NCBI GenBank assembly: GCA_946965045.2
Contig: OX337234.1
Span: 558,001 to 622,000 of the forward strand
Source of the DNA: Epithemia pelagica
Lineage: Eukaryota; Protista; Bacillariophyta
Direction of reading: 5' to 3'
Length of the DNA: 64,000 bases
In this document: positions 188 through 20,343 of the stretch, piece after piece
How positions within the stretch are numbered: position 1 is the stretch's first letter
Layout of the letters: every line of letters starts with the position of its first letter
The notes under the pieces: generated by a model
What the model saw: only the letters and a program-made list of their open reading frames with translations
Databases searched by the model: none
What the model was told of the DNA's origin: nothing
Position numbers and translations under genes: made by a program

Positions 188-805
188 TCCGGAGCAGGCA
201 ATCCCGAAAAGACTTCTGAGGCACTGAACGACTGGATTGCTGCTGGTGAGGCGAAATCCTGTGAAGATATGCCAGAGACGAAGGGTTTCACCGCGGTTTT
301 GAGATCATGGCTCCGATCCAACCGTTCCGATGCCGCTGAAAAGGCTCACAGAGGCTTGCAACAAATGATGGACCTTGCTTCAACAGGGAGATTTCAATGC
401 TTTCCTGACCGCTATTCCTTTTCAGTTGTGATCTCGGCCTATGCCAAGTCTAATTCCAAAAAGGCCGGGAAAAGAGCTCTTCAATTACTGGAGGAGCTTA
501 AGAGTTTGTTTCGTGAGAAAAATGATCGAGCACTAGATCCGGATCTCTTCATGTATGTAGAGGTCCTGGTTGCGTGCTTGAGTTCGATGCAGATTCAGGA
601 GGGGGAGGAAGCGATTCGTAATCTTTTTCGAGAGCTCTTATCGAAGGAGGCCTCTTTTTGGCAAGAGGCAGACATGGATGTTGTGCCTCGATGGTTGCGC
701 AGATTGCGTCGCGCGTTTCAATCAAGCTGCTTCAAATATGACGAGTTGCTAGAGTTGGATTTGGAGCGAATCGAATCCATTGCGAAAAATGCTGTGCGCC
801 GCTAA
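188..805 (+). pseudogene. 3' part of a PPR gene (copy 1 of the cluster); 5' side replaced by unrelated AT-rich sequence
   Basis: From ~188 the DNA aligns with the C-terminal ~200 codons of 17329..20343 (AGNPEKTSEAL, PETKGFTAVLRSW, PDRYSFSVVISAY). Positions 1-187 show no such homology, and the ORF-track start at 167 is a GTG in that non-homologous DNA. Confidence 0.8.
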
Positions 806-1239
806 TGGATGGATAGATTGTTGTCTGTCGTTGTCTCTATACTTGAAGAAAGTTGGTTCCATCCCTTTCAAGCAAAGCTGGTCACCGAAAAGTGTCTTCA
901 TTTGTCTTTTCCGTAGGTCCTTTTCAGAGCGGCTTCGTCTTGGGACTTGGGATTTTGTAGTTTGCCTCTGGAGAATTGTGGCAAGTGGCAATAGCGATAG
1001 GAGTAAAATGGAAGAGAGAATGGAACTATGATATGGACTATACCTAATACCTACCTACTCTCATCTCTCATATATGGCTATCATTATGGATATTGGATAC
1101 ATGCATAAAATATACAGAGTTCTACGATACAAACAACCACATAAGACATAAGTAATAAGTACTCATCTAGTGTGAATTGTGTTGGGCCAGTCATTCATAT
1201 GACTGGTCGTGAACTGGTCATGAAGGATCTGAGGATGAC

Positions 1240-1846
1240 ATGGCCTATCAACAAAGTTTTGGGTTCTTCACCATGACGAATGGACATTGATGCGGCATCA
1301 TGTGCAAGAGCTGCTACCCAATAACTCTCCCCACTGTGGTGGAGGCAATGCCCCTGGCGCTTGGTTGTTTCAAAACAATTACGAACCAGAATTTGGCAGT
1401 CGTCATGAACGCCAGGTTGGGAGATTGGGGGATGGAGGCAAGTGGATCTGTGATCCTCATCGATTGCGACCAACCACAACAAAGGTGGAATCCTCTTTGC
1501 AGGAACAGCCACAGCCATGTTTGGTGTACAGTGTTGGATTTTTCATTTGAACAGGGTATTTGGGATGATATTGGTCCTCATTGTGAAATCCATACCTTTG
1601 ACATTACCAGTTACGAGACCACGGCAGCCAAAATTCGAGAAGGTCGTATTCCAAGTCCCAAACAACTCTTGCAACCCCATCATTATCCCCTACCCTTACA
1701 CTTTCATCCATGGGGCCAGAAGCAGCTCCGTTCACAACGGCAACAACACAAGCAAGAGGAAGGAACGGGGAGTCTTTCGCACTTTGCAAGAGACAGTGGA
1801 AATCTTGGGACATGTGGGTCGAACGATTCATATATTCAAAATTTCA
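1240..1846 (+). pseudogene. Frameshifted, 3'-truncated SAM-dependent methyltransferase (Methyltransf_22/METTL24-like), N-terminal half
   Basis: Family motifs are spread over different frames: MAYQQSFGFF / NYEPEF..HERQVGRLGDGGKWICDPHRL..CLVYSVG / DFSFEQG...HCEIHTFD / RTLQETVEILGHVGRTIHIFKI. At least 3 frameshifts; it stops just before the expected DCEGCEW motif. Confidence 0.75.
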
Positions 1847-2497: not shown

Positions 2498-2659
2498 TCG
2501 AGACCAGATACTATGTTTCTATAGTTCATTTCTGTGTGAAAAGACATAAAGATTGATATACGATATGTCCCCAGTGTACAAGCCGCAACTCAAAAGCTGG
2601 ACCCACTGAGGCTTATCTTCCGGTGAGGCTTAACTAACGCTATTTACGGTAATACACCT

Positions 2660-3330: not shown

Positions 3331-3369
3331 CTCTCCAAACGCAAACTACCAATCAAGTCCCACAGGATC

Positions 3370-4008: not shown

Positions 4009-6849
4009 TCAAAAACGATTATGAATCGCTTCCTCCCCGTCCTGAATCTGCATCGAATTCAAGCACGCAACCAGGACCTCTACATACATGAAGAGGTTTG
4101 GATCTAGTGATCGATCATTTTTCTCACGAAACAAACTCTTTAGCTCCTCCAGTAGTCGAAGCGCTCTTTTTCCTGCTTCTTTTGACTTAGACTTGGCATA
4201 GGCCGAGATCACAGCTGTAAAGGAATGCCGGTCAGGAAAGCATTGAAATCTACCTGTCGAAGCAAGATCCATCATTTGTTGCAAGCCTCTGTGAGCCTTT
4301 TCGGCGGCATCGGAACGGTTGGATCGGAGCCATGATATCAAAACCGCATTGAAAGCCTTCGTCTCTGGCATATCATCAAAGGATTCCGCCTCACCAGCAG
4401 CAATCCAGTCTTTCAGTGCCTCAGACGTCTTTTCGGGATTACCTGCTTTGGACCAGGACTGGAGACGGACTGTATAGGTTTGAGCCGTTGGTTTTAGGGC
4501 TTCGTTCCCGGAAGTGTATCCATCTTTCATCTCTTTAAACAATGCTTCCACTTTGTCGGGTCGTATATGTCGCATCCAACCGGACATCAATGAGTTGTAC
4601 ATACGAAAAGACTGTTGTACTTCATCTTGTTCACATTCATGCAGCAGTTTTTCAGCTTGCTCCAACATTTTGGACTCACTTGACCATCCAAGACTCCATA
4701 TCACTGCATTGTAAGTATACTCTGTCGGCTTTGCAAACTTATCACCCTCTCTCTCTTGCTTCTTCATCTTTTCAAATAGCTTCAATACAATCTCACATTT
4801 ATCAGACTGTTTCGTTCTCGATAAAGCCAAGATCAACGAGTTGTAGCTAACAACACCTGGCATGATGTTCAGGGATTCCGTAAGGTTGAAAACACCCATT
4901 GCTTTTTCCGCTTGTCGCGAGTCTTGAGACGAAGACCACACATCAATCACAAGATTGAAATGACGATGGTCGATCACCGACGCATCCAAACTCTGTTCAT
5001 TTACTCTTGTGCAAAAGCTACGCAGAGCAATCTCAGCTTGATCCGGTTTGCCAGCCTTGCACCATGCAACAATCTGATTGTAATAGCTATCACCATCTGG
5101 TTTCAAAGCAGCATTGTTGAGGTTTTCCATCCACTCAATCAAGGCTTCCGTCGACTGGGCTCCCTCGACTGTTCCCATCAATGAGTAAAACTGCAAGAGA
5201 TTATTCAGCGTTGATGTGGTGACCATTTCAGGAACATGGTTTTCTTCTCCATATTTGATTAATCGCTGGATCCATTTAGATATATAGACAGTCGCGTCCG
5301 TATGTCCCGATCGTGCCCATGCGACAAGAACACCATCCCATACTGCCGTCTCCTGGAGCTCTGCAAATGATATCTTCCCGATTTCCACTTCCTCCAAAAT
5401 TTTATTTGCAATCACTTCAGCGCGAAAGCTGTCTCCAACTTTCGCAAAGGCCCAGACGAGGGCCGCGTAGCTAACCGCTGTTGGTCGTAAACTGTCAGCT
5501 CCCGTTTCGTATGCCAGTTGTTTCATTTCAATGAACAATTTCTCCGCCTTATCTGGGTTTCCCAATTGCCCGTAAGCAGTAATCAGCGTGCTGAACGTAT
5601 ACCTGTCGGGCATTGGAGTTGCGCTGTTTTTCTGTACGACTGCGTCGCACATATCGTTCAGGATTGTGTGAGCAGCCGAAACCGATTCTTGAGACATGCA
5701 CCCGACCAAAGCATGACATACTCGGTTGTAGATTCTAACATCAAGCTCTTCTGAAGAACAGATTTGTTTCATTTCGTCAAACAATTGCTGAATTCGTTTC
5801 AATGCCGCTCGTGACTCATTCAAGCGACTGTGAGCTTCCATGACAGCACAGTAGACGTTCGGGTCGGGTCGCTGGTCGTGACGATTGGTTTGCTTATACC
5901 ATTCTTTCAATGATATCAGATAGTCTTCTATACGGTTGATACTGCCCGAAAGCCAGCTCTGAGCCCATATCTCAACCATGCTATTGACAATACGTGCATT
6001 TGGATGAAACAACATGTCATGAGGATGGCCTTTGCTTTTCTCTATCAACAGGTTGTAAATTTTGTCGGCCTCGTAAGGAGCATATTTTGGATCGTCCACC
6101 TTGCTCATCGCACGTAGAATAATGGAGTATGATGTCGTGTCTGGCTTGAACAAACCGACATGAAAGTATCGATTAACACTTGAAAGGATCGATTTTGTTC
6201 CAAGGGGAGCCGAAACGTTCCCTGGATTCCATTGCCCTCCACGCGCACGTTGCTTCTTGGCATACAAGAGATTTGTCGTGCTTGCTGTTCCGGTTTTTGC
6301 TTTGATATGGTCAAGCCAAAACTCCAGCGTATGATTCAACAAGTTTGTATCCAACTCAGATTTTATGTCGTCTGTGTTTATCGAACACTTCTGTTGGATC
6401 CATTCCATTTCATCAGCGAGCCGATCTAGCACACTAAACATATATTCAACTCGCTTTGGGACAGCGTCATCGGAGAGTCTCGGGTTTGTCCGCAATGCTT
6501 TGAGAAGTTCTTGCGCTTCCATCCAGTGTTGCGACTCGAAGGTTCCTGGTTCCATGGATATCAAGCGGTCCTTGGTAGAAATCCACGACTTGACGAAACT
6601 AGAGTCATTTGAAACCACCACTTTCCGTCCGACACCGTGGTCATCATTTGTTGATATGAAACGAATTGCTTCTCGATCGTGAAAATGAGAAGTCGTCAAC
6701 GATGACCAAGGTCGAGTAGGATTTCCCAGTAGACCGGATTTCCTGCGCACATGTTGGAAAGTCCATTGCGGCCCAGATGTGACTCTTGTGATTCGTCTCA
6801 ACCAACGAGACACGAGATACTTTGATGCTACATTCAATGTATTGACCAT
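4009..6849 (-). CDS. Pentatricopeptide-repeat protein (copy 2) with ~17 P-like repeats; C-terminus shortened by a premature TGA
   Basis: PPR motifs PDRYTFSTLITAYGQLG, PTAVSYAALVWAF, PGVVSYNSLILAL and PTEYTYNAVIWSL. The likely start MVNTLN at 6849 is inferred from homology to copy 3 (the ORF track extends to 7011). TGA at 4009-4011 aligns with CGA in both other copies, and the homologous frame continues to TAA at 3826-3828 through a second stop (TAG 3838-3840). Confidence 0.9.
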   Translation of the reverse strand: MVNTLNVASKYLVSRWLRRITRVTSGPQWTFQHVRRKSGLLGNPTRPWSSLTTSHFHDREAIRFISTNDDHGVGRKVVVSNDSSFVKSWISTKDRLISMEPGTFESQHWMEAQELLKALRTNPRLSDDAVPKRVEYMFSVLDRLADEMEWIQQKCSINTDDIKSELDTNLLNHTLEFWLDHIKAKTGTASTTNLLYAKKQRARGGQWNPGNVSAPLGTKSILSSVNRYFHVGLFKPDTTSYSIILRAMSKVDDPKYAPYEADKIYNLLIEKSKGHPHDMLFHPNARIVNSMVEIWAQSWLSGSINRIEDYLISLKEWYKQTNRHDQRPDPNVYCAVMEAHSRLNESRAALKRIQQLFDEMKQICSSEELDVRIYNRVCHALVGCMSQESVSAAHTILNDMCDAVVQKNSATPMPDRYTFSTLITAYGQLGNPDKAEKLFIEMKQLAYETGADSLRPTAVSYAALVWAFAKVGDSFRAEVIANKILEEVEIGKISFAELQETAVWDGVLVAWARSGHTDATVYISKWIQRLIKYGEENHVPEMVTTSTLNNLLQFYSLMGTVEGAQSTEALIEWMENLNNAALKPDGDSYYNQIVAWCKAGKPDQAEIALRSFCTRVNEQSLDASVIDHRHFNLVIDVWSSSQDSRQAEKAMGVFNLTESLNIMPGVVSYNSLILALSRTKQSDKCEIVLKLFEKMKKQEREGDKFAKPTEYTYNAVIWSLGWSSESKMLEQAEKLLHECEQDEVQQSFRMYNSLMSGWMRHIRPDKVEALFKEMKDGYTSGNEALKPTAQTYTVRLQSWSKAGNPEKTSEALKDWIAAGEAESFDDMPETKAFNAVLISWLRSNRSDAAEKAHRGLQQMMDLASTGRFQCFPDRHSFTAVISAYAKSKSKEAGKRALRLLEELKSLFREKNDRSLDPNLFMYVEVLVACLNSMQIQDGEEAIHNRF

Positions 6850-7151
6850 GTTGAAGAACCGAGATGTGAATGGGTAGTTGTCTCTACCACCGAACCATGT
6901 GCTCCCTCCGTGACCATGTGCGTGGACACGCTTCCAAACGCGGACGTCGTGGTGATTGCTTCGAAGGCTGTCATTGTCTCGTTCTCTGCAGCTGCAAGGA
7001 GGCGGGTGCAAAACAAATGGGGGGGAGTCTCTTGATCCACAGAAAGAGGGGGTGAAATGTGGGGGTAGCTACCGTCAGTCGTTGGGTTTGGGGGGGGAAG
7101 GTTTGTTGGCGTGAGAAATGAATCTTTGGTTTCCATAATACTCTGATTACG

Positions 7152-9098
7152 ATGACGACCTCGAACCATCACGAAACCACCACCAAACCTTGGTACGGCT
7201 CGTTGTGGAATTCTGCTGCCGCGCCCAGCACGATACCAGCAGCAGAGCCAAGGAGGAATACTGTCTCGCCGCTTCCTTTTCTCTCACGCGTCTTCTTGGT
7301 GGGTGTCGGATGGTGGATTCTTGTTGTGGTGATGGTGGTTGGTTCCGGCATGTATTATTCCTTGAATGACGGTTTCCATGCACGGAGCTTTTCCTTTTCG
7401 GCACGAAATAAAATTGTTCCAGGGAAGACGGTATGGAACAAGAACGACAACAACAACAAAGATGACAGTAGTTGGATGCCCAATGTGGGAAATTATTCTC
7501 TGCCCATTACGGTGGGCAACGGACCAGCATATCTCAAAGTCCAACGGCTCTTTGATACGGGTTTGATGCACTGCTATGGATTTGCGCAACGACAAGCGCA
7601 AGAAATGGCGAACCAAGCACTGCACGATACGAATGCTACTGCGGCCGCAACATGCCCCATGTGCTTTTGGCTGGCTGCCATGGCACGAGCTCCCTTCCTC
7701 AATCATCCCATCTTGTCCAATGACACGTTTCGGGAGGCTCGTCATGCCGCACAACAAGCTGTACAAGCTGCAGCGCAGCATCGTGCCGTGTTGACGGCCA
7801 AAGAATCCGCATTGATTCACTCCTTGAGCGTACGATTTGACACTATCGAGAATCCTACGGCAGGTTACCAAGCCTATCGTGAGGCTCTGCGCAACGTCTT
7901 GCAACAACCACAATTGTGCAACGACACGGATCTCCTGGCATTTTATGCCGATGCGATCATGGTGTTGCATTGCGACGACAATGGATACCACTTTTATCAA
8001 GACGACAATCGAACGCCACTGCCCGACATTGTCGAGGCCATGGACGTGTTGGAGCACTGCTTGGCCGTGTCCTTTCATCCACTCTGCGCACACTTGTACA
8101 TTCACGTGACGGAACCCAGTCTCCAGCCCGAACGAGCGTCGGCCGTTGCCCAAAAATTATCCAACTGGTTTGCCGATACCCAAGCCCAGCATTTGCAACA
8201 CATGCCCTCGCACACAGCCTTAAGGGTTGGATCCTACCATCAAGCCGTACAAGCCAATGTACAGGCCCGTGCCTCAGACCAAGTCTGGATACAGCACGAT
8301 CAATGGCCGTACGGGCCTGCCCATGACCTGGCCTTTTTGATTCATGCGGCCGGTTTATCGGGAGAACGAGACGTGGCCTATCACTATGCCGACCAATTGC
8401 GACAGCACTATGCCGACCATCCCAATCAACCCGACGGACCCGGTCCCGAACAGGGATGGCATATTTGGCGCACAACGCGGTTGCGCTTTGGCGATTGGCA
8501 GGCCGTTCTGGACGATTCGGACCAATTGCCTCGTCCCGATTGGCCCTATGCGGTGCTTTTGGGACACTTTTGCAAGGGCATTGCGGTCCTACGCACGGAA
8601 CCTTGTACCACCGACCCGGCCAAGGAGTATTTGAACCAACTTCGCCAAGTAGCAACAGGGATCGAGCAAGAAGGCTTTCGTTCCATCTCCAAGGTGGCCG
8701 ACGGAATGTTATCGGCTGCTATTGCGTTGGCGGATGGACTGCCCGATGTGGCTCTGAATGCCATTCGTTTGGCCCGACAAGAACAGGACAGTTGGACCTA
8801 TAATGAACCGCCCAAATGGTTCTTGTCCATGACCGCGTGTGAAGCTGCCTTGTTACAACAGTTGGGTCACCACGAGCAAGCCATGGCACTCTTTGAACAG
8901 GATGCAACAACACTTGTCAAAGACAGTCGTTTTGCCGTGTATGGGTTGTTGCAGAGCATGAGAGCCTCGAGTCGTTCTTCGGCACCCGAGATTGCGGCCG
9001 TTGAAGCACGATATCAAGAGGCTTCCAAGTGGGCGCGACCACAAGATGATCCACCCCAAACCATTTGTCCGGCCTTTGAATCATGGTCCTTTCCATGA
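7152..9098 (+). CDS. Intronless TPR-like alpha-helical protein with one N-terminal TM segment (bacterial/fungal TPR-domain family with HP..HLYIH / HMPSH motifs)
   Basis: 648-aa ORF with TM segment VFLVGVGWWILVVVMVVGSGMYY and family motifs GNYSLPIT..QRLFDTGL..YGF, CPMCFW, HPLCAHLYIHVTEPS, HMPSHTALRVGSY and RLRFGDW. Confidence 0.75.
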   Translation: MTTSNHHETTTKPWYGSLWNSAAAPSTIPAAEPRRNTVSPLPFLSRVFLVGVGWWILVVVMVVGSGMYYSLNDGFHARSFSFSARNKIVPGKTVWNKNDNNNKDDSSWMPNVGNYSLPITVGNGPAYLKVQRLFDTGLMHCYGFAQRQAQEMANQALHDTNATAAATCPMCFWLAAMARAPFLNHPILSNDTFREARHAAQQAVQAAAQHRAVLTAKESALIHSLSVRFDTIENPTAGYQAYREALRNVLQQPQLCNDTDLLAFYADAIMVLHCDDNGYHFYQDDNRTPLPDIVEAMDVLEHCLAVSFHPLCAHLYIHVTEPSLQPERASAVAQKLSNWFADTQAQHLQHMPSHTALRVGSYHQAVQANVQARASDQVWIQHDQWPYGPAHDLAFLIHAAGLSGERDVAYHYADQLRQHYADHPNQPDGPGPEQGWHIWRTTRLRFGDWQAVLDDSDQLPRPDWPYAVLLGHFCKGIAVLRTEPCTTDPAKEYLNQLRQVATGIEQEGFRSISKVADGMLSAAIALADGLPDVALNAIRLARQEQDSWTYNEPPKWFLSMTACEAALLQQLGHHEQAMALFEQDATTLVKDSRFAVYGLLQSMRASSRSSAPEIAAVEARYQEASKWARPQDDPPQTICPAFESWSFP

Positions 9099-9106
9099 CT
9101 ATCATA

Positions 9107-9128
9107 AGAGAGAGAGAGAGAGAGAGAG
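9107..9128. repeat. (AG)11 microsatellite
   Basis: Direct reading of the sequence. Confidence 0.9.
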
Positions 9129-9227
9129 AAGCTAATTCTGTGATTGGAAGAGAAAGTGGAGGTGCATTCCATTCATCCCTCCTGTGGTGGTTGCACCTGC
9201 TGTTTGTGGGGTGAGCATAAGGAGGTG

Positions 9228-9715
9228 CGCGGGGATCGACCCAGCGAACACATCCTGCAGGTTGGAGCGGTCTGTGTTGTCGCGAGGTCGTCACAGTAGC
9301 TAGTAGGAGAGAGTGCTAGGATGTAGACACACACGTTTGCCGAAAGGCCCAGAAGGAACCAAGATGGCTCCCACGGGCGGGAAGGGGGAATTTTTGATTG
9401 TCTTAGTCTATCTATCTCTGTGTAGACCTCTCAAGATGGCAGTTGCAATGCTCGCAATCTCAAGAATTGTGAGCATGGACATCGCATCAGAGATGTCCAA
9501 GTCCGGTGGGGCTTGTCGTAGTCTATGTGCGATCAACTGCCCCGCTCCAACGTACGCACGACAGACACCGCGGGGATCGACCCAGCGAACACATCCTGCA
9601 GGTTGGAGCGGTCTGTGTTGTCGCGAGGTCGTCACAGTAGCTAGTAGGAGAGAGTGCTAGGATGTAGACACACACGTTTGCCGAAAGGCCCAGAAGGAAC
9701 CAAGATGGCTCCCAC
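9228..9715 (-). repeat. 3' split-direct-repeat block B1-A2-B2 of the YR retrotransposon
   Basis: 9228-9374 = 9569-9715 (147 bp); 9391-9567 = 16984-17160 (177 bp). Confidence 0.95.
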
Positions 9716-9768
9716 CACCATTGAAGAAGACAGCATTTCGGAATCGTCTGACTTGATGGATCTTGTTC

Positions 9769-11079
9769 TCAAAACTCAAGATTCAGCTGTGTCGCAAAGG
9801 TTCCGAATGCAACGGAGCCATTGAACTTGATTTCCTCCGGAGACTCTATTGCTGCCTCAAGGTTTGATTGGATGGCGTCGACGTCTCCTCGTGTGATTTC
9901 GGTTTGGTTGGCTGGGTCGACGTGTCGAAAGTCTGGGTTAGTCAACATCATTGTTGACATGCCAGCCGTCCACTCCATGACCTGGGGTCGGATGTATCGG
10001 AGAAATGCCGCGGATGACCATCTCCCCAGGATCATGATCTTCAAGACGGAGGCGCGGGCAAGGAACAGGGCCATCGCGGCTCCAGAGCGAAGGGAGTGCG
10101 TCCCTATTTCCTTGGGACGGTATCCGAACATGGACTGTCCACCACCGTTGGTGCATGATGATCGGAGGAGTCGGATTGTATCTTCGGCTCTGATGAATCG
10201 TGGTTTGGGCGTGGTCGTCTTGGAAAGTTGGTGTGGGTCAAACCAACAATTCACCGGCGTCGTTGGTGGTGCGTCTGGTCTGTAATGGAGGATGCGCCGG
10301 ACGATGCGCCCCCAGAGTCGCACTGGGCAAAGAATTGGGTCGGCAGTACGGCTTTGTGTGCGTGTTTCATACTTGGCGTCGGATTTTTGTTGGGTGAAGG
10401 TGATTGAAACGAAGTGTGCGAGTTCGTTAAATTGGGGGTCTGTTGGTTCGATTGTGGATCGCAGTTCGTCGTTTCGTTTGAACCGTATGTTTCCAATCGT
10501 CAACAGCTTTGTTTTTCCACGTTGTTTCACGGTGGAGTATTCGCAGCTGCGCATGGCGAAGAAGTATCCGGCGAGTGCGAGGTCTGCGATACAGGCGTCA
10601 AACGTGGAGAGGTTGATGTCGCCATGGATTCTCGTGGCGTACTCCCACATGAAGCGAAGGTGTCGGGGTGTTATCGCTTTCTGTCTTTTCTCGTCGGGGT
10701 CTATTTGGGCCCAAGCTTTCTTTAATGACTCGATTATGGGGTGGTGCCGGTTGCATCCCGGGACGTGGCAGGGGCTCGGCCGGTCGTTATACCGGAAGCG
10801 CGATGCCACGTCGCTAAGGGCCTTCTCGAGAGTCGATGCTCGAAGAGGCTCCGTAGCCCCTCTCGAGAAAGCTCCATCTCGCAGTCGTTGGAGGAAGGTG
10901 CCAACGATCTGCGATCGCGTACGAAGGGTCTTGATTCGGTCAAGAAAGGGGTCGTCTCGGAGTCTGAACAATTCGAGATGGAGGAGCCATCTCCTCCATG
11001 TCCTGTCGACGGCCTCATTGGACGATTCAACTCGTCCAAAGAATATTCGCGCAGCCGCGGTGCGACGGATGAGATCCAT
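9769..11079 (-). CDS. Tyrosine recombinase (integrase) of the retrotransposon
   Basis: Catalytic residues FFAMRSCEY (R), HSLRSGAA (HxxR) and GRWSSAAFLRY (W...Y). Overlaps the RT/RH ORF by 346 bp in another frame. Confidence 0.92.
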   Translation of the reverse strand: MDLIRRTAAARIFFGRVESSNEAVDRTWRRWLLHLELFRLRDDPFLDRIKTLRTRSQIVGTFLQRLRDGAFSRGATEPLRASTLEKALSDVASRFRYNDRPSPCHVPGCNRHHPIIESLKKAWAQIDPDEKRQKAITPRHLRFMWEYATRIHGDINLSTFDACIADLALAGYFFAMRSCEYSTVKQRGKTKLLTIGNIRFKRNDELRSTIEPTDPQFNELAHFVSITFTQQKSDAKYETRTQSRTADPILCPVRLWGRIVRRILHYRPDAPPTTPVNCWFDPHQLSKTTTPKPRFIRAEDTIRLLRSSCTNGGGQSMFGYRPKEIGTHSLRSGAAMALFLARASVLKIMILGRWSSAAFLRYIRPQVMEWTAGMSTMMLTNPDFRHVDPANQTEITRGDVDAIQSNLEAAIESPEEIKFNGSVAFGTFATQLNLEF

Positions 11080-14000
11080 GACGCGATTTCGTTGGGTAGG
11101 GGACAGATCCGGAAGTTCTGCGGAATCTGGGAAGAGTAAAGGGAATGGATTTTTTGCGTTAGAACTTTGTCACAACAATCAAACGTGCGAGAGAGAAGGT
11201 CAGTAACCACATTTGCTTTGCCCGGGATGTGCTCGGGGTGGAGGAGAAAGTTGTATTCTAACACCAAGTCTGTCAGTTTTTCAGATACCCGTTGGTGGTT
11301 GGGTTTGTTGGACCCAAAGGATGATTTGTGCATCCATCCAGTTGCTGAGCTGCTATCTGATAGCCCGAGCACACAGGATTCGGTTGGGACTGCACCGGCC
11401 AAACAATCTACCCAAATCGTGACCACTTGGCACACAAACTCGAACAGATTGTTTGAGAGTTTGAGGTCGGGTTCTTGGCCGAGTTCGTCGGTTTCTGTGT
11501 CTGTCTTGTTTGCGGCTAAGGCATAAATCTCGGGGTCGAGAGGAACATGCCACGCCTTGCCGGTACGGACGGAAAAGCCGCCCATGCCATACGGGCATGA
11601 GTCAGCAATCATAACATGAGTTGGGCGCCGGCAGGTGAGTAGGTTGAGGCTGATCCCTTTGTGGGCTTTTGCCAAAAGTTTCGTCCATACTTGGAGGTCC
11701 TGTCTAACTGCTTTTGGAATCTTGTACCTGAACCAGGGTTTGGGGCGGTCTTGGACTCTAGCGGAAGGTACATCTTTGACGTGCTCGTTGAGGCCTTTTT
11801 TATCTGATCTTTTGGCTCGGTGTTTGCTCAAAATGTGTTCTTTCAACTCTTGGCACCTCTTGGTGTAGTATAATGCTAAGGGGATGCCTTTGCAGGCATG
11901 AATCATTTTGCCCAGCATCGATTCCAACTCTTTGAAAGTCACATAAACTCGTTTGGGATCTAACCAAGTCTCAATTTCGCGCGACCAGCATGTGAACTTG
12001 TCAAAAGGTAAGCGCATCTGTAACCGGCGTGTGTCAATAATCCAGCCCAATACGCGCATTTCTTCTGACGGTGCTCCCTCTGCTTTCATCTTGTCTTCAG
12101 CGAGAATGTCGTTTCGGTCGATCGGTTCATCCGGCATGGATGGTCGAACCAGTAGATGAAGGACCAGAGGGACGATGCCTGGTGCTCGGTTGATAAATTT
12201 TTCGCAATCCACAAAAAGCTGAATCATATCATCAATATACACGTCGTGGTATCCTTGTGGTCTGGGCTCGACGTCGACAGCCATGGGTTGGGCTGGGTGG
12301 AATGGGATAGATTCATCGAGCCGTTGGATTTTGCCCATAAGGTCTTGTAAAGGCGAACGGCAAACAGAGGGGTCCCACTCGTCCAAATCTGCAACATCGT
12401 TGCAGAGGTCGCAGGCTGCCTCTGAAAATGTACTAAACATCGCGGGGTGCGGACGGCCACCAAAGGTGAGACGGGTCAAGAGATTTGCGAAGTCTCCACT
12501 CACGTCTGTTGTGATTGTGTTGGCCACTAAGATTCCGTCACCGTTAATTCTTCGGTAGGCGGAACCCCAGTCAAACTTGCAGATGAGAATACGCCTATTT
12601 GGGAATTCTTGCCGAAGAGCGACGGTTTGATGGATGATGCGGTCAAGACACCATCCAAAGACGAGGTCAATTAAATCCGATTCGTCGACTAAGTCGTTCA
12701 AGGACGGCGCAAATCCCAAGGAGAAAGATTGGTCGTGAGCTAAACGATCTTTGATCACGATGTTACCGTGCTCATCAATTCCGGCATGTTGGGCAACGCC
12801 CAGTGGTCCAGCCCGGCCTTGTTGGATTTGTCGTGCACAATCAAATGATATGGGGAACGAGTAACCGAATTTTGTGTCTTTTTTGCAGACTTTGATAAGA
12901 GCTTCTGGGCGTTGTCGTGCGGAGGCGTGGTTCCCATATGCGAGTATCGCATCATTCTCAAATTGTCGGTTGATATCTGGGGGAAGAGGTTTGAAGTCGT
13001 AACTGGCCCCGTTTTTCAATGTGTCTTGAATTTTGTTCCAGAAAGGGTGGTATCGAAGGAGCTGGGCAATCGATCCTAACGGACGGAACTCAGAGCCTGG
13101 GCTAATTGTCGTGCCTGGGTATGCATCGAACAATCGTTGGAGGTCAAACCCAAATGATGCAATGAGTTTTGAATTGAATTCTGCTGCATCGGCTGTCGTC
13201 TGGTGTCGAAAAGGTGATGGTCGTGGAGCAGGAACTTGTTCTTTGCAGATGTGTAAGATTGTCTCGATCTTGTGTTCATGGGTTGGTGTAGCTAGTGGTG
13301 GGCGCTGAATCTTATGAGTAAAAATCAGCTTTGGGTCGTTTGGTAGATAGTTGTGGTTGCCCCCTTGAAAGTCAACAAGGGAGGGGTTTTCGTGGTTGTC
13401 TGTTGTGGTATTGGTAATGGAAACAGGGTTAGACTCACCTAGCATAGATTCTCCCAATTGGATCTCAGATTCAAGTCGAGAAAGATTCCGTTGAAGGGAC
13501 TTTCCTGACAAGTCAGAAGAAATATTCGGAGAAGGTGAGCCTAACGATCGCGGTTTGCCAAAAGGAATTAGTTGGTGTTGTGTAGTGGTCAGGGTTTCGT
13601 CCTGCTCGTGGTTCCGAGTCGATGCAATTTCGATGTCCTTGATAAATTCGTCGTTATCTGGAATAATCGTTGTGGGTGAAGTATTATCCGTTGGGTCTTG
13701 TCTAGATAAGTCATTCTTGGGGTAACGTAGTATAGGACGTGTAGTAGGTTTAGGTTTGGGGGAGTTCGGGTTCGCAACTCTACATGCTGGTTTCCGCAAG
13801 TCGAAAATTTTAGTCTTGAACTCTGTCGTGAAACGGACGCCGGGTTTGGGAAGGCTTGGAGTGCTGGGGAGCAGAATCTTTTGAGCAACATCAGACGACG
13901 AGATTCGACGTTCATCCGAAAAGACTTGGGGAATCAGTGGTGAAGGGGTATTTGGTACTCGGTAAGGGATGGGATCTGCTGATGGGGAAGAAGGGATAGA

Positions 14001-14117
14001 TTGTCTTCGAGCGATTGGTGGGGAAGGTGGGCAGAGAGATGAGAAGTAAGAAGAACTGTTTCTGCTAGAGGAGGAAGGAGCAACATTACCAGTATCATCA
14101 ATCGGCCCGGTACCATG
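10734..14117 (-). CDS. Reverse transcriptase + RNase H (DIRS-type)
   Basis: RT motifs ICKFDWGSAYRRI, LTFGGRPHP and VYIDD; RNase H motifs IADSCPYGMGG, LSDSSSATGW and HIPGKANVVTDLLSR. The ORF track starts at a TTG (13799), but the frame stays open upstream to the ORF1 stop at 14118. Confidence 0.92.
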   Translation of the reverse strand, partial: HGTGPIDDTGNVAPSSSSRNSSSYFSSLCPPSPPIARRQSIPSSPSADPIPYRVPNTPSPLIPQVFSDERRISSSDVAQKILLPSTPSLPKPGVRFTTEFKTKIFDLRKPACRVANPNSPKPKPTTRPILRYPKNDLSRQDPTDNTSPTTIIPDNDEFIKDIEIASTRNHEQDETLTTTQHQLIPFGKPRSLGSPSPNISSDLSGKSLQRNLSRLESEIQLGESMLGESNPVSITNTTTDNHENPSLVDFQGGNHNYLPNDPKLIFTHKIQRPPLATPTHEHKIETILHICKEQVPAPRPSPFRHQTTADAAEFNSKLIASFGFDLQRLFDAYPGTTISPGSEFRPLGSIAQLLRYHPFWNKIQDTLKNGASYDFKPLPPDINRQFENDAILAYGNHASARQRPEALIKVCKKDTKFGYSFPISFDCARQIQQGRAGPLGVAQHAGIDEHGNIVIKDRLAHDQSFSLGFAPSLNDLVDESDLIDLVFGWCLDRIIHQTVALRQEFPNRRILICKFDWGSAYRRINGDGILVANTITTDVSGDFANLLTRLTFGGRPHPAMFSTFSEAACDLCNDVADLDEWDPSVCRSPLQDLMGKIQRLDESIPFHPAQPMAVDVEPRPQGYHDVYIDDMIQLFVDCEKFINRAPGIVPLVLHLLVRPSMPDEPIDRNDILAEDKMKAEGAPSEEMRVLGWIIDTRRLQMRLPFDKFTCWSREIETWLDPKRVYVTFKELESMLGKMIHACKGIPLALYYTKRCQELKEHILSKHRAKRSDKKGLNEHVKDVPSARVQDRPKPWFRYKIPKAVRQDLQVWTKLLAKAHKGISLNLLTCRRPTHVMIADSCPYGMGGFSVRTGKAWHVPLDPEIYALAANKTDTETDELGQEPDLKLSNNLFEFVCQVVTIWVDCLAGAVPTESCVLGLSDSSSATGWMHKSSFGSNKPNHQRVSEKLTDLVLEYNFLLHPEHIPGKANVVTDLLSRTFDCCDKVLTQKIHSLYSSQIPQNFRICPLPNEIASWISSVAPRLREYSLDELNRPMRPSTGHGGDGSSISNCSDSETTPFLTESRPFVRDRRSLAPSSNDCEMELSREGLRSLFEHRLSRRPLATWHRASGITTGRAPATSRDATGTTP

Positions 14118-16967
14118 TCAAGAATTATTTCTCGCGTCGTTGAAGGCCTTCTTGTAAAATGACGACATAGCTGGGCCTTTACCATGTTCTCGAGGGTCGG
14201 CATGACTGAAATGGCATTGGTTTCCATTTTTGCAATATTTCAAGGTAAAGAGCTTATTGCAAAACGGACGGTCAACACCATCGGCCGTCATGTGGGGGAT
14301 TTTCGCCAAAACAGAGCGAGGAAACACTCGAGAATATTGGAGGTCAGCGGGTATACACCAATCAGCCGGTGAATCGAATCGGACAACCGTTGGTGGAGAA
14401 GGGTCGGGTTCAACAGAGGCCTTGCGTTTCTTGGGGTTTGTCGAAGTAGAGGAAGAAGCCGACGAATTCTTGAGAAAGTCATGTTGAGTCTTAGCTTTTG
14501 CCCGAATCGCTGATTCGATAAACTTCGGCAGCATCTTACAAATATCTTCTTTGGATTCGATCTTGTCGCAGAGTTTATTTATATGGAACTCAAGGCGGTC
14601 GCAACGGATATCCTCAACACACTTGGCGTCTTCAAGATACGAATCGATAAATCGTTGAATCGCAAAATCAATCGAGAAAAGGACACGACAAAGGAAGGTA
14701 GGGTCAACTGCCTGGCTGCTGCGGTAAATATATCGGTTCGATAAGATGTGCTCCACCATCTTATGGAGTTGGAGGGCAACGAAACATTCGTTGTTCCAAA
14801 TCGCGCATGCAAAGAGATAAAATGAACGGAGTTGTGTTTGATACTCATCACAGGTAAGTGGACAAAAAAGCTTTTCGTTCACAAAAATATCTCTCATGTC
14901 TTTTGTTGAAAGCCCGTTATCGCTCCGCAATGAGCTCTCGTAGATAGCATGTTGAATGTCGTGGTCGAGAGCAAGGTGGGAGTCAGGACCAGAACAACAG
15001 TAAGGATCGAAAGAGAAAGGAGAAAATCCGCTCGGATGGTCATTTCCTCGCCAACGGAGTCCAAACTTTTGTAAAACGCCACATTGACCAAAAAGGATGT
15101 AACAGGCGTTGTCTGATTTTCGAAAGACACGAGCGTGAATCGTCGAATAAAGAGTATGCGTACTCTTCTGATGGAACAACTCGGTCGCGATCTCGGAAGG
15201 AGAAGAAGGGAGTTCCAATGAGGAAGGACCAACCTGGCCAAACACTATGGCGTTACGAAGATGGGTAGTGTGTTTGAAAATCTCTTTCTTTTCGTCTTCT
15301 TTCTCACGTGTCATCTTGGAAGTGTGCTTAGCAATGGCGTCAGACAACTTATCGGTAAGCTTCTCAGTCATATAAATTGTATCAGCTGAAATGGGATGGC
15401 TTGCGGGTGAATGTTCATTGACTCTAAAATTCTCAAATGTTGGCGGTTGACCGTGGGGAGGGGCAACAGGGGCGTCCAGCACAGGTGGAGGGAGGATACC
15501 TTGGGGAGAAGAAGAAGTTGGTTCGGTTTTCAGAAAGGGGAATAGCTGAAACTTGTATGACTCAAAGGCAGTCGTTGCTTCAGATGAGTTCGGGGGAACC
15601 TCAATGGCAATAGGTTCCACACATGACCGTTTGTGATGAGCAAACCAGAGGAACCTAAACAGAGGGAGGCTCGACTTGAACAGGTCATGATACATAGGGA
15701 CTGAGGTGCACTTGGCTTGAAGTTCTTGGGGAGTTGACATTGTCCAACGATCATTCAGAAACTTGAAAATGAATGAAGCGAGGAAAGGGGCCGAGAGTTT
15801 TGAGGAATTGAGTTCTTGGGCGTCAAAGTGACTCAACAATAAACCTGAGAGAGCAGGATGAAGGGGGAACAAACCTTTCAAGGAGAAGGTAGTCGCTGCT
15901 TCATCCAAGTCTGCAGTCGGCTTCTTGAGGGAGCCAAATCGAAGGGTATCGAAATGGAAGGAGGGCAAAGTATCGGCTGCACGGGATTTCTTAGACGAAG
16001 AAGGAGCATTCTTGTCGATACAACAAAACTTCATAATCTCGTGAGCTGAAGGTACATCAGGATACTCGACTGAAAGCAGTAAAGCATCCACGTCTTCGGG
16101 ATCCAGCCAAATAGGGGGTGAGTTGAACTTGCAATGGGAAAGGCCAAAGAAAATCGGATCGGGGTTCACGAAGTTTCCGGTGTTCGGGGCCACCAATAAG
16201 TTGTGGAGGATACGGATCTTGCCGCGACGGTCAACACCTAAAAAGGCCAATGGGGTGTTGGAACCAAGGTCGCAGGAGATAAAGCGTTGGAGCTTTTCTG
16301 CACAAGAAACGGTATCAAACTTGTCGAAGAATTCAGACCAGGAGTTCGACGATTTATCCAAAGATCGGTGAAAGGGTGAGCTAAAAGCGTCAGACCAATC
16401 CACAGGATTCATTGAATCGACCAGTTCAAGAGTATCTTGGGAGAACGGGATAGGAACTCGGTAAAGATCAGAGGGACGGGACAGGGAAGTCGGCGTCTTG
16501 GTGTCATCCTCGGATCCACGTGGGGGCTGATGGCGATTAGAAGAAACAAAATCCTTCTTCGAAATCTTCTTATGAGTCACCTTGGAGGAGGCAGAAGATT
16601 TCTTAGAGGTGTAGTTCGCCGGGGTAGTACCTTCGTCATCCTGATCGGGACTCGATGAAGGTTTCGTCGTCTTCTTCGAAGTTTTGACACTCTTAGAAGA
16701 ACGGGACTCGAGACTTCCGGAACTACTCGAACGAGTGCGACGACGGCCAATGCCAGAGTCCTCGGGGACATCAGGAGGGTTACCGTCCAAGCTCAAAAGA
16801 TCGTCATCATCATTCGTACCGTAATGAGATTCGGGCTGGGAAGGCTGCGAGATAAACTGAGCCAAAGTGGCAGTCCCGTTGCCTTCAGTACCGCCAGAAT
16901 CGGAAGGAGAAGCCGTGTCTTCCATGTTGGAAAACATCTCGTCGTCAAAGGCAGTAGTAACAGTCAT
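14118..16967 (-). CDS. ORF1 (gag-like) of the YR retrotransposon with a C-terminal CCCH zinc finger
   Basis: 949-aa ATG ORF directly after repeat A1; C-x8-C-x5-C-x3-H motif (CNKLFTLKYCKNGNQCHFSH) near the C-terminus. Confidence 0.85.
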   Translation of the reverse strand: MTVTTAFDDEMFSNMEDTASPSDSGGTEGNGTATLAQFISQPSQPESHYGTNDDDDLLSLDGNPPDVPEDSGIGRRRTRSSSSGSLESRSSKSVKTSKKTTKPSSSPDQDDEGTTPANYTSKKSSASSKVTHKKISKKDFVSSNRHQPPRGSEDDTKTPTSLSRPSDLYRVPIPFSQDTLELVDSMNPVDWSDAFSSPFHRSLDKSSNSWSEFFDKFDTVSCAEKLQRFISCDLGSNTPLAFLGVDRRGKIRILHNLLVAPNTGNFVNPDPIFFGLSHCKFNSPPIWLDPEDVDALLLSVEYPDVPSAHEIMKFCCIDKNAPSSSKKSRAADTLPSFHFDTLRFGSLKKPTADLDEAATTFSLKGLFPLHPALSGLLLSHFDAQELNSSKLSAPFLASFIFKFLNDRWTMSTPQELQAKCTSVPMYHDLFKSSLPLFRFLWFAHHKRSCVEPIAIEVPPNSSEATTAFESYKFQLFPFLKTEPTSSSPQGILPPPVLDAPVAPPHGQPPTFENFRVNEHSPASHPISADTIYMTEKLTDKLSDAIAKHTSKMTREKEDEKKEIFKHTTHLRNAIVFGQVGPSSLELPSSPSEIATELFHQKSTHTLYSTIHARVFRKSDNACYILFGQCGVLQKFGLRWRGNDHPSGFSPFSFDPYCCSGPDSHLALDHDIQHAIYESSLRSDNGLSTKDMRDIFVNEKLFCPLTCDEYQTQLRSFYLFACAIWNNECFVALQLHKMVEHILSNRYIYRSSQAVDPTFLCRVLFSIDFAIQRFIDSYLEDAKCVEDIRCDRLEFHINKLCDKIESKEDICKMLPKFIESAIRAKAKTQHDFLKNSSASSSTSTNPKKRKASVEPDPSPPTVVRFDSPADWCIPADLQYSRVFPRSVLAKIPHMTADGVDRPFCNKLFTLKYCKNGNQCHFSHADPREHGKGPAMSSFYKKAFNDARNNS

Positions 16968-16983
16968 CGTAGATCCAAAGTTG

Positions 16984-17160
16984 TTTTTGATTGTCTTAGT
17001 CTATCTATCTCTGTGTAGACCTCTCAAGATGGCAGTTGCAATGCTCGCAATCTCAAGAATTGTGAGCATGGACATCGCATCAGAGATGTCCAAGTCCGGT
17101 GGGGCTTGTCGTAGTCTATGTGCGATCAACTGCCCCGCTCCAACGTACGCACGACAGACA
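16984..17160 (-). repeat. 5' terminal repeat A1 of the YR retrotransposon
   Basis: Same 177-bp sequence as 9391-9567. Confidence 0.95.
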
Positions 17161-17328
17161 GAATGCGATATTTTTTACAGGAATTATTAGCAAGGTTGGA
17201 AAAGGTGTTGTTGTTATTAAACCGTCTGGCCTTCGAAGCTCCTAGTTCACCTCAAAGTCCGACTTTGGAAGTGTGTCCACGCACATGATCAATGGTGGTA
17301 GGGACAATCCACATCTCGTTTCTTCACC

Positions 17329-20300
17329 ATGGTAAACACATTCAATGTAGTATCGAAGTATCTGTTGTTTCGTCCCCTGGGACGAATCACAAGAGTCACA
17401 TATCGACCGCAACGGACGGTACAACATGTGCGCAGGAAATCCAGTCTACTGGGAAATCCTACTCAACCTTGGTTCTCGTTGATCACTCCTCATTTTCACG
17501 AACGAGAAGCAATTCGTTTCATGTCAACAAATGATGAACAAGGTGTCGGAGGGAAAGTGGGGGTTTCAAAAGACTCTAGTTTTGTCAATTCGTGGATTTC
17601 TACCAAGGACCGCTTGATATTCATGGAACCAGGAACCTTCGAGTCACAAAACTGGATGGAAGCCCAAGAACTTCTCAAAGCATTACGGACAAACCCGAAA
17701 CTATCTGATGACGCTGTCCCAAAGCGCGTAGAATATATGTTTGATGTACTAGATCGACTCGCCGATGAAATGGAATGGATCAAACAGAACTGTTCCGATA
17801 AGAAACCTGAGTTGAAGACAAACTTGTTGAATCATACGTTGGATCTTTGGCTTGACCATATCAAAGTACGAGCTGGAACAGAGAGCGTGACAAATCTCTT
17901 GCATGCCAAAAAGCACCGTGCGCGTGGAGGACAATGGAATCTAGGCCACCTTTCGGTGTCCCTTGGAACAAAATCGATCCTTTCAAATGTCAATCGATAC
18001 TTTCATGTCGGTTTGTTCAAGCCAAACACGATACCATACTCCATTATTCTACGTGCGATGAACAAGCTGGACGATCCAAAATATGCTCCTTACGAGGCCG
18101 ACAAAATTTACAACCTGTTGATAGAGAAAAGCAAAGGCAATCCGAATGACATGTCGTTTCATCCAAACGGATGCATTGTCAATGACATGGTTGAAATTTG
18201 GGCCCAGAGCTGGCTTCCGGGCAGTATCGACCGTATAGAAGACTATCTGATATCACTGAAAGGATGGTATAAGCAAACCAATCGTCACGACCAGCGACCC
18301 GAACCGAACATATACTGTGCTGTCATGGAAGCTCACAGTCGGATGAATGAGTCACGAGCGGCATTGAAACGAATTCAGCAATTGTTCGACGAAATGAAAC
18401 AAACCTGTTCTACAGAAGAACTTGATGTTCGAACCTACACCCGAGTATGTCATGCTTTGGTCGAGTGCAAGTCTCAAGAATCGGTTTTGGCTGCTCACAC
18501 AATCCTGAACGATATGTGCGACGCAGTCACGCAGAAAAGCAACGCAACTCCAATGCCCAACAGTTATATGTTCAACACGCTGATTACCGCTTACGGGCAA
18601 CTGGGAAACCCAGATAAGGCGGAGAAATTGTTCAATGAAATGAAACAACTGGCATACGAAACGGGAGCTGACAGTTTACGACCAACAGCGATTAACTACT
18701 CGGCTCTCCTCTGGGCCTTCGCCAAAGTTGGAGACAGCTTACGCTCTGAAGTGGTTGCAAACAACATTTTTGAGGAAATGGAAATCGGAAACATATCATT
18801 TGCAGAGCTCGAGGAGACGGCAGTATGGGATGGTGTTCTTGTGGCATGGGCACGGTCAGGACATGCCGACGCGGCTGTCTATATATCTAAATGGATTCAG
18901 CGATTAATCAAATATGGGGAAGAAAACCATGTTCCTGAAATGGTCACCACATCAACGCTGAATAAACTCTTGGAGTGTTACTCATTAATGGGAACAATTG
19001 AGGGAGCCCAGTCGACAGAAGCCTTGATTAAATGGATGAAAAACCAAGACACTGCTGCTTTGAAACCAAATGGTGATAGCTATTATTGTCAGATTTTGGC
19101 ATGGTGCAAGGCTGGCAAACCGGATCAAGCTGAGATTGCTCTACGTAGCTTTTGTACAAGAGTACGTGAACAGAGTTTGGATGTGTCGGCGATCGACCAT
19201 CGTTATTTCAATATTGTGATTGATGCATGGTCTTTGTCTCAAGACTCTCGACAAGCGGAAAAGGCAATGGGTGTGTTCAATCTTATGGAATCACTGAACA
19301 TCAAACCAAATGCTGTTAACTACAACACATTGATCTTGGCTTTGTCGAGAACAAAACTATCTGATAAATGCGAGATTGTATTGAATCTGTTTGAAAAGAT
19401 GAAGAAGCAAGCGAGAGATGGTGATGAGTTTGCAAAGCCGACAAAGCGGACTTACAATGCAGTCATATGGAGTCTTGGATGGTCAAGTGAGTCAATCAAG
19501 TTGGAGCAAGCTGAAGAACTGCTTCGTAAATGTGAACAAGATGAAGTACAACGAGACTGTCTCATGTACAACGCATTGATGTCGGGTTGGATGCGACATG
19601 TACGGCCTGACAAAGTGGAAGCATTGTTTCAAGAAATGAAAGATGGATACAATTCCGGGAACGAAGCCCTAAAACCAACAGCTGCAACACACATAGTCCG
19701 TCTCCAGTCCTGGTCCAAAGCAGGCAATCCCGAAAAGACGTCTGAGGCACTGAATGACTGGATTGCTTCTGCTGAGGCTGAACCCTTCCACGATATGCCA
19801 GATACGAGGGATTTCTCTGCGGTTTTGACAGCATGGCTCCGATCCAACCGTTCCGATGCCGCCGAAAAGGCTGACAGAGGCTTGCAACAAATGATGGACC
19901 TTGCTTCGACAGGGAGATTTCAATGCTTTCCTGACCGGCATTCCTTTACAGCTGTGATCTCGGCCTATGCCAAGTCTAAGTCAAAAGAAGCAGGTAAAAG
20001 AGCGCTTCGATTACTGGAGGAGCTGAAAAGTTTGTTTCGTGAGAAAAATGATCGAGCACTAGATCCCAACCTCTTATTGTATGTAGAGGTCCTGGTTGCG
20101 TGCTTGAGTTCGATGCAGACGCAGGACGGGGAGGAAGCGATTCGTAATCTTTTCCGAGAGCTCTTATCGAAGGAGGCCTCTTTTTGGCAAGAGGCAGACA
20201 TGGATGTTGTGCCTCGATGGTTGCGCAGATTGCGTCGCGCGTTTAAATCAAGCCGCTTCAAATATGACGAGTTGCTAGAGTTGGATTTGGAGCGAATCGA

Positions 20301-20343
20301 ATCCATTGCGAAAAATGCTAAACGACGGCAGGTGCGCCGCTAA
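17329..20343 (+). CDS. Pentatricopeptide-repeat protein (copy 3, intact), probably mitochondrion-targeted
   Basis: Uninterrupted 1004-aa ORF with ~17 P-like repeats, about 84% identical to copy 2 over the repeat tract (hand count). The N-terminus is rich in R/S/L and nearly devoid of acidic residues up to RFMST, like a mitochondrial presequence. Confidence 0.92.
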   Translation: MVNTFNVVSKYLLFRPLGRITRVTYRPQRTVQHVRRKSSLLGNPTQPWFSLITPHFHEREAIRFMSTNDEQGVGGKVGVSKDSSFVNSWISTKDRLIFMEPGTFESQNWMEAQELLKALRTNPKLSDDAVPKRVEYMFDVLDRLADEMEWIKQNCSDKKPELKTNLLNHTLDLWLDHIKVRAGTESVTNLLHAKKHRARGGQWNLGHLSVSLGTKSILSNVNRYFHVGLFKPNTIPYSIILRAMNKLDDPKYAPYEADKIYNLLIEKSKGNPNDMSFHPNGCIVNDMVEIWAQSWLPGSIDRIEDYLISLKGWYKQTNRHDQRPEPNIYCAVMEAHSRMNESRAALKRIQQLFDEMKQTCSTEELDVRTYTRVCHALVECKSQESVLAAHTILNDMCDAVTQKSNATPMPNSYMFNTLITAYGQLGNPDKAEKLFNEMKQLAYETGADSLRPTAINYSALLWAFAKVGDSLRSEVVANNIFEEMEIGNISFAELEETAVWDGVLVAWARSGHADAAVYISKWIQRLIKYGEENHVPEMVTTSTLNKLLECYSLMGTIEGAQSTEALIKWMKNQDTAALKPNGDSYYCQILAWCKAGKPDQAEIALRSFCTRVREQSLDVSAIDHRYFNIVIDAWSLSQDSRQAEKAMGVFNLMESLNIKPNAVNYNTLILALSRTKLSDKCEIVLNLFEKMKKQARDGDEFAKPTKRTYNAVIWSLGWSSESIKLEQAEELLRKCEQDEVQRDCLMYNALMSGWMRHVRPDKVEALFQEMKDGYNSGNEALKPTAATHIVRLQSWSKAGNPEKTSEALNDWIASAEAEPFHDMPDTRDFSAVLTAWLRSNRSDAAEKADRGLQQMMDLASTGRFQCFPDRHSFTAVISAYAKSKSKEAGKRALRLLEELKSLFREKNDRALDPNLLLYVEVLVACLSSMQTQDGEEAIRNLFRELLSKEASFWQEADMDVVPRWLRRLRRAFKSSRFKYDELLELDLERIESIAKNAKRRQVRR

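Follow-up and report, generated by a model that had tools for sequence, protein, structure and literature searches.

The window analysed here is a stretch of 64,000 nucleotides from the diatom Epithemia pelagica (contig OX337234.1, positions 558,001 to 622,000 of the forward strand), and it holds part of a cluster of young, recombining P-type pentatricopeptide repeat (PPR) genes. Comparison of the copies shows that the helical scaffold of the encoded proteins is under purifying selection, whereas the start of each PPR motif evolves at close to the synonymous rate. At the two residues of each motif that form the PPR code (the 5th and the last), interchanges among D, N, S and T are estimated to be accelerated; we regard this acceleration as a strong lead, not as proof. 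We give about an even chance to the reading that the RNA specificity of these genes is still being retargeted while the scaffold stays conserved, either by diversifying selection or by tracking of a changing organellar RNA.

Where the PPR copies differ

The window contains two full-length copies, A and B, arranged head to head with a spacer gene and a retroelement in between, and a partial copy, C:

4009-6849, minus strand: copy A, PPR gene, 946-codon open reading frame (ORF), from the six-frame ORF list, Pfam and tblastn
17329-20343, plus strand: copy B, PPR gene, intact, 1004 aa; best Protein Data Bank (PDB) match maize PPR10 (4m57), E = 2e-12
18025-20166, plus strand: PPR tract of B, codons 233-946, 17 motifs
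188-1024, plus strand: fragment C, 3' flank plus the last 209 codons (188-802 corresponds to B codons 796-1004)

The ORF list runs copy A as 4009-7011, from an upstream TTG start. The window corresponds to position 312403 onward of contig ctg1302l in ENA assembly ERZ21939226, and a second head-to-head pair, D and E, lies ~40 kb upstream on the same contig. The cluster therefore comprises four copies in ~67 kb on one haplotype. The A/B pair also exists in a divergent version, referred to below as A2 and B2, on a 31-kb haplotig (ctg906l). A DGAT2 gene from another contig of the assembly finds its best named matches in diatoms (Epithemia clementina 60%, Entomoneis 45%, Thalassiosira 41% and Chaetoceros 38%), which identifies the host as a diatom, probably of the raphid pennate group. 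The first-pass annotation of this DNA had reported three paralogous genes plus remnants. The window itself holds two genes and one fragment, and the fragment comes from a fourth copy whose 5' part lies beyond the window; the broader claim of a clustered PPR family with birth-and-death features is borne out by the four copies, which include partial and disabled members.

Pfam assigns both full-length copies to PPR families, with all matches above the cut-offs (A: PPR_2 8e-29, PPR 4e-23, PPR_3 1e-19; B: PPR_2 2e-27). The protein encoded by B begins with a disordered segment (codons 1-83), followed by a helical N-domain that is specific to the family (84-232), 17 PPR hairpins (233-946) and a C-terminal helical tail. 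In an AlphaFold2 model of B with a mean pLDDT of 80, residues 235-946 form 34 helices, corresponding to the 17 hairpins, and the top PDB matches of the model are maize PPR10 and the designer PPR-RNA complexes (4m57, 4m59 and 5i9f; E = 2e-12 to 1e-9). The motifs are spaced 38-47 residues apart and do not keep the canonical length of 35 residues; the family is a long-loop PPR variant. Automatic motif calling with a hidden Markov model (HMM) built on a 35-residue seed collapsed to a 25-column model of helix a, and the 17 motifs were instead anchored by hand at the helix-a starts. In the AlphaFold2 model each of the 17 position-5 anchors is preceded, at a distance of exactly four residues, by the start of a helix, and the motif register is therefore confirmed. 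The Arg/Ser-rich N terminus of B has nine R/K and no D/E among its first 57 residues, has no obvious signal peptide and is modelled with pLDDT <30 over residues 1-83. From these properties we infer that the disordered, acid-free N terminus is a putative mitochondrial presequence.

Copies A and B are 88% identical in nucleotide sequence over 3.3 kb and 82% identical in protein sequence (blastn and tblastn). Over 721 aligned residues there are 113 differences, and these are distributed unevenly. In the 7-residue windows that run from the last residue of one motif to position 6 of the next, 41 of 119 sites differ (34.5%), compared with 72 of the 602 other sites in the tract (12.0%; Fisher p = 1.9e-8); the code positions differ at 12 of 34 sites. 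The recount agrees closely with the hand count in the first-pass annotation (12/34 code positions, ~41/119 window sites, ~12% elsewhere and ~111 differences over ~718 residues), and the strings quoted there are all present in the alignment (PD-RYTF-S / PN-SYMF-N; LD-VRIY-N / LD-VRTY-T; PE-TKAF-N / PD-TRDF-S / PE-TKGF-T). The enrichment is not peculiar to A and B: the five full-length copies form 10 pairs, and every one of them shows it, pairs of intact copies included, with Fisher p values from 1e-2 to 1e-11. The copies align nearly without gaps at 89-91% nucleotide identity.

Resolved by motif position, the replacements accumulate at the last position and at positions 1, 2, 3, 5, 6 and 9, where there are 0.27-0.52 nonsynonymous changes per site compared with ~0.48 synonymous changes. 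Positions 4, 7, 8 and 11 are invariant or nearly so. The hot zone takes in the loop and helix a up to the end of its second turn, i.e. the RNA-facing start of the motif; this is the side that faces the RNA in solved PPR-RNA complexes. The variation is thus concentrated where the first-pass annotation had placed it, on the RNA-facing start of each motif, but the idea that it is specific to the 5th and last residues does not hold, because it is spread over all of the hot positions. Differing 5/last pairs among copies occur in 12 of the 16 scorable motifs, and no two copies compared over the full tract have an identical 5/last array.

A mutational hot spot at the motif starts is ruled out as the cause of this pattern. 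The synonymous divergence (dS) is the same inside the windows (0.18-0.20) as elsewhere (0.18-0.21), and both values are close to the Jukes-Cantor divergence of the non-coding flank (0.164).

As controls we used two pairs of recent divergence that belong to other branches of this protein family. P0018/P0020, from the same genome (dS 0.075), has the opposite pattern, with differences at 1 of 119 window sites and 22 of 595 other sites and a ratio of nonsynonymous to synonymous rates (omega) of 0.07 versus 0.20. P0008/P0017, from a second assembly (dS 0.087), has differences at 11% of window sites versus 8% of other sites and shows no enrichment. Neither control pair shows the enrichment, and the pattern is therefore specific to this cluster and not general to the family; both pairs also rule out the idea that motif starts are always unconstrained in these proteins. 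The first-pass annotation had named the same enrichment in ordinary single-copy diatom PPR orthologues as an observation that would speak against its proposal, and the two control pairs remove this objection. The gene-wide omega is 0.45 in the cluster and 0.21 in P0018/P0020. Separately, another branch of the family (ctg1292l; P0009 and P0018-P0021) is also duplicated and has one paralogue broken into two ORFs on one haplotype; the motif-start residues of this duplicated branch are conserved.

Substitution rates at the code residues

The copies have exchanged sequence. Sliding windows reveal patches of near-identity between changing pairs of copies: close to the 3' end a stretch of 150 nt contains 1-4 differences between A2 and D, and mid-gene one contains 2-9 between A and A2. 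Sixty percent of informative site pairs fail the four-gamete test, and a PHI-like statistic lies below all of 2000 permutations. The copies are mosaics that arose through non-allelic gene conversion. Single-tree selection tests are therefore unsafe for mosaic copies, and we used segment trees of 40, 75 and 150 codons together with tree-free pairwise fits, all of which agree. Codon likelihoods were computed under GY94/F3x4 with a separate neighbour-joining tree for each segment, and models M1a and M2a were fitted by expectation-maximisation over a grid of omega values.

The codon maximum-likelihood (ML) estimate of omega is 1.00 for the 7-residue windows and 0.33-0.35 for the scaffold and the rest of the tract, and the corresponding NG86 values are 0.85-1.09 and 0.26-0.31. 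For the last, 2nd and 5th positions together the ML estimate is 1.20 (interval 0.95-1.50; point range 1.15-1.30), and for position 2 alone it is 1.6 (1.05-2.4). The fitted mixture places ~55% of sites at an omega of ~0.05 and ~45% at an omega of ~1.

A different picture emerges when the replacements at the code positions are separated by type. Among the single-step alternatives at the 5th and last positions, 14 of 21 stay within the set D/N/S/T, compared with 6.5 expected from the mutational neighbourhood (p = 3.5e-4). We then fitted a two-omega codon model in which D/N/S/T interchanges have one rate and all other replacements another. At the 34 code sites the swap omega is 3.0 (2.0-4.5) and the omega for other replacements is 0.5; compared with a swap omega of 1, 2dlnL is 19.2 (p = 1.2e-5). 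Away from the code sites the swap omega is lower, at 0.6 over the remainder of the tract and 0.5 over the N-terminal region. Tree-free pairwise fits give swap omega values of 1.25-6, with a statistic above 3.84 in 7 of 10 pairs. Simulation of the null model (150 replicates, one omega of 1.05 throughout) returned a median estimate of 1.0 and a statistic with a 95th percentile of 3.7 and a maximum of 7.5. The control pair P0018/P0020 gives a swap omega of 0 (0-1), and P0008/P0017 gives a value of 2 (0.75-5) that is not significant and reflects four N/D toggles at the last position. The per-site omega hid this signal, which was exposed by an omega specific to the type of substitution at the PPR code residues.

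Turnover of the copies and the surrounding window

The condition of the copies varies widely:

B: intact, 1004 aa; the sole fully intact copy on the window's haplotype
A2: intact, 1006 aa; on haplotig ctg906l
B2: intact, 1008 aa; on haplotig ctg906l
A: CGA to TGA at codon 943 and CAG to TAG at codon 1001
D: 1-bp deletion (frameshift) near codon 212
E: 334-bp deletion; broken by a ~39.5-kb insertion

The premature TGA of copy A lies at 4009-4011 and corresponds to codon 943 of B, where the other copies have CGA or CAA. The homologous coding tail runs on to ~3826 and includes the second nonsense codon, TAG at codon 1001, where the others have CAG. Unitigs from public runs contain no alternative letter at 4009-4011, although these unitigs are short, are fragmented across paralogues and carry little weight on this point. 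The sequences of the copies, including the 334-bp deletion of E, are present in unitigs from independent runs of the same study.

Fragment C is the detached 3' end of E, parted from it by the ~39.5-kb insertion, because the limits of their homology to B abut and both lie on the same strand of the same contig. The homology of E to B ends at ~19712 (B coordinate) and that of C begins at ~19716, so that the junction lacks a few bases at most. The 5' part of E is at 271049-273109 of contig ctg1302l, ~39.5 kb upstream of C. Between the two lie bacterial-like genes (Y2_Tnp, Bac_luciferase, TctA and TctC) and eukaryotic transposons. The alternative that C is a leftover of unequal crossing-over is ruled out by its identity as the 3' end of E severed by a large insertion. 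From the placement of the copies and the derivation of C from E, we conclude that the ancestral arrangement was two tandem units, D(-)/E(+) and A(-)/B(+), each built around a conserved spacer gene.

Two features occupy the space between A and B:

7152-9098, plus strand: spacer gene, 648 aa, with an N-terminal membrane anchor
9228-17160, minus strand: young retroelement with two large minus-strand ORFs and 100%-identical repeats

The spacer gene matched no Pfam family. It is kept in all three versions of the duplicated unit, with a dN/dS of 0.14-0.30 at a dS of 0.09-0.18. On haplotig ctg906l it is inverted (window 7152-9098 versus L004 7584-9539), and this flip is the signature expected of flip-flop inversion through recombination between the inverted PPR repeats. 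The repeats of the retroelement are 177 bp (9391-9567 and 16984-17160) and 147 bp (9228-9374 and 9569-9715) in length, each 100% identical between its two copies. Haplotig ctg906l lacks the element, which ends 169 bp upstream of the ATG of copy B.

When haplotigs are compared (L001 versus L002; window versus L004), blocks at 99.3-99.98% identity are interspersed with others at 87-93%, and in some blocks the alleles have diverged as far as the paralogues have. This alternation points to very old haplotypes in which heterozygosity has been lost in patches.

Elsewhere in the window we observed the following:

32898-40309: Copia-type long terminal repeat (LTR) retrotransposon (RVT_2) with 241-bp, 100%-identical LTRs at 32898-33138 and 40069-40309
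40993-45066, minus strand: 1357-aa ORF, with a ~121-bp tandem repeat of 99% identity at its 5' end (45057-45420)
48952-52560: 1202-aa ORF with a 5'-nucleotidase C-terminal domain and a family-3 (sweet-taste type) seven-transmembrane receptor domain
53724-55442 and 60740-62468: inverted duplication of ~1.7 kb, 91% identity

Readings of the pattern and known parallels

The predicted fold and the occupancy of the code positions by D/N/S/T suggest that these proteins bind single-stranded organellar RNA in a sequence-specific manner through residues 5 and last. On the model of PPR10 and the designer PPRs, each hairpin would contact one base, which would be read mainly by these two residues. The comparison of the copies itself shows that replacements at the 5th and last positions are funnelled into D/N/S/T interchanges, estimated to be fixed about three times faster than synonymous changes, and that gene conversion together with flip-flop inversion between inverted copies reshuffles the recognition variants. 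Copies die through nonsense mutation, frameshift, deletion or insertion, with a high rate of loss.

Several observations weigh against retargeting. The ML omega for the 5th and last positions is 1.05 with an interval that spans 1 (0.75-1.40), and the NG86 value is lower, at 0.75-0.81. M2a fits no better than M1a, with a statistic of 0.00-0.06 on a single tree and on segments of 150, 75 or 40 codons alike. The first-pass annotation had taken a failure to find dN/dS >1 at the code positions as evidence against its own proposal, and the standard tests indeed show no class of sites with omega >1 there. Its proposal of diversification at the code sites is consequently not supported by the standard site models; it is partly rescued by the post hoc estimate of a D/N/S/T swap rate of ~3 times the synonymous rate. 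The swap test was devised after the data had been seen, although its residues were taken from the published PPR code, and because D, N, S and T are chemically alike some bias toward them is expected anywhere. The sample consists of only six or seven sequences from one individual, and the codon code was custom-written, with simulation and comparison with NG86 as its only checks. The plant PPR code may not hold for these proteins, given motifs of 38-47 residues and several non-canonical residues (C, D, Y, V and I) at position 5. Finally, three of the four copies on the window's haplotype (A, D and E) are disabled, which fits decay.

Decay is the essence of the first and main alternative, relaxed constraint, which we consider possible but on balance doubtful. 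Here the genes would be redundant duplicates whose RNA-reading surface drifts neutrally, with the fold weakly kept or recently released from constraint and the cluster heading for pseudogenisation. The class omega of ~1.0 at the motif-start windows, the near-neutral best mixture to which M2a adds nothing, the disabled state of A, D and E/C and a gene-wide omega above that of P0018/P0020 (0.45 versus 0.21) are all in keeping with such a course. It does not readily explain why the scaffold omega is 0.33 in every pair, intact pairs included, why replacements at the 5th and last positions are held within D/N/S/T (p = 3.5e-4) or why swaps occur at ~3 times the synonymous rate (p ~1e-5), a result that is robust to recombination and calibrated by simulation. 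The same sites are, moreover, strongly constrained in the sister subfamily (omega 0.07).

Compensatory co-evolution is a second alternative, and an unlikely one in our judgement. The proteins would be ordinary stabilisers of organellar mRNAs, or translation activators, that follow a drifting binding site such as a fast-evolving mitochondrial intergenic region or untranslated region, with variants supplied by duplication and gene conversion. The sequence evidence for it is identical to that for retargeting, the data give no hint of a selfish organellar element, and the spacer gene and flanks evolve normally. However, a single drifting site would create no obvious need for several intact, divergent copies with different predicted codes (B, A2 and B2). 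An artefact of wrong motif register, alignment error, assembly chimeras among 90%-identical copies or inflation by gene conversion is highly improbable: the copies are mosaic, the automatic motif HMM collapsed and the unitigs are fragmented across paralogues, but the alignment is nearly gap-free at 89-91% nucleotide identity, the register is matched by 17 predicted helix starts, tree-free pairwise statistics agree, dS is uniform across site classes and the copies lie on long HiFi-style contigs with distinct flanks.

To our knowledge, rapidly diversifying clusters of organellar RNA binders are textbook material only for the angiosperm genes called Restorer-of-fertility-like (RFL), with one algal parallel, the NCL octotricopeptide repeat (OPR) genes of Chlamydomonas. 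The angiosperm RFL clusters of P-class PPR genes were reportedly described by Fujii et al. in 2011 and by Melonek et al. in 2016. The diatom cluster resembles them in that its P-type PPR genes are clustered, have more than 10 motifs, include partial or disabled copies and recombine with one another. As in RFL genes, the gene-wide omega is higher than that of a control from another subfamily (0.45 versus 0.21), and the variation clusters at residues that contact the RNA, 5, 35 and 2 among them. The differences are equally clear. There is no specific sequence kinship, as plant PPR proteins match at only 20-24% identity over 35-47% of the query; the diatom motifs, at 38-47 residues, are not near the 35-residue consensus; the diatom hot zone is broader (last, 1, 2, 3, 5, 6 and 9); and the cluster is tiny, with four copies per haplotype. 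No positively selected class is detected by M1a/M2a in the diatom cluster, whereas about one-third of barley RFL groups give P < 1e-11 in the same comparison, in a study that also summarises the features of RFL clusters (PMC7380019). The diatom cluster thus lies outside the plant RFL clade and would be functionally analogous only. Specific relatives of the cluster were found only in two ENA assemblies, in a word-limited search that does not imply their absence elsewhere.

The nearest algal precedent for an RFL-like system is the NCL (NCC-like) OPR-RAP cluster of Chlamydomonas reinhardtii (Boulouis et al. 2015), in which single substitutions are reported to change the RNA target (summarised in PMC8635915 and PMC13126933). 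Like the diatom cluster, it is a non-plant tandem cluster of helical-repeat organellar RNA-binding proteins, but NCL proteins are built of OPR repeats with a C-terminal RAP domain, are directed to the chloroplast and belong to the green lineage, whereas the diatom proteins are PPR proteins. The RAP domain is not matched in A or B, for which Pfam gives PPR-type families only, apart from a sub-threshold TAN match in B. In structure, the closest known proteins are PPR10 and the designer PPRs (4m57, 4m59 and 5i9f), which are the best matches to the predicted fold, although sequence identity is only 14-23%. Their complexes with RNA are the model for recognition of one base by one motif through residues 5 and 35. 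PPR10, in contrast to the diatom genes, is a chloroplast factor present as a single conserved copy, and its code residues are conserved as well.

For the mito-nuclear conflict or organellar RNA surveillance inferred in the first-pass annotation, the sole pertinent feature is the presequence-like N terminus, and a conflict with the mitochondrion finds no direct support. A more specific version of retargeting is that diatoms have a convergent RFL-like system, in which new PPR specificities are selected against changing or selfish mitochondrial RNAs such as chimeric or mobile ORFs, invading introns or mitochondrial RNA viruses. We regard this version as quite unlikely, and we know of no biology in diatoms that resembles cytoplasmic male sterility. 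If it were true, organelle-directed arms races would not be confined to the cytoplasmic male sterility of flowering plants.

No account of an RFL-like PPR cluster in diatoms came up in full-text literature searches, and a 2026 survey of alpha-solenoid organellar factors calls diatoms unexplored (PMC13126933). A diatom PPR cluster with the RFL pattern, that is, a conserved scaffold, swapping of code residues faster than neutral, gene conversion and turnover of pseudogenes, would point to nuclear retargeting of organellar RNA binders as a process general to eukaryotes. The cluster is also a possible entry into the regulation of organellar genes in diatoms, which is almost unexplored.

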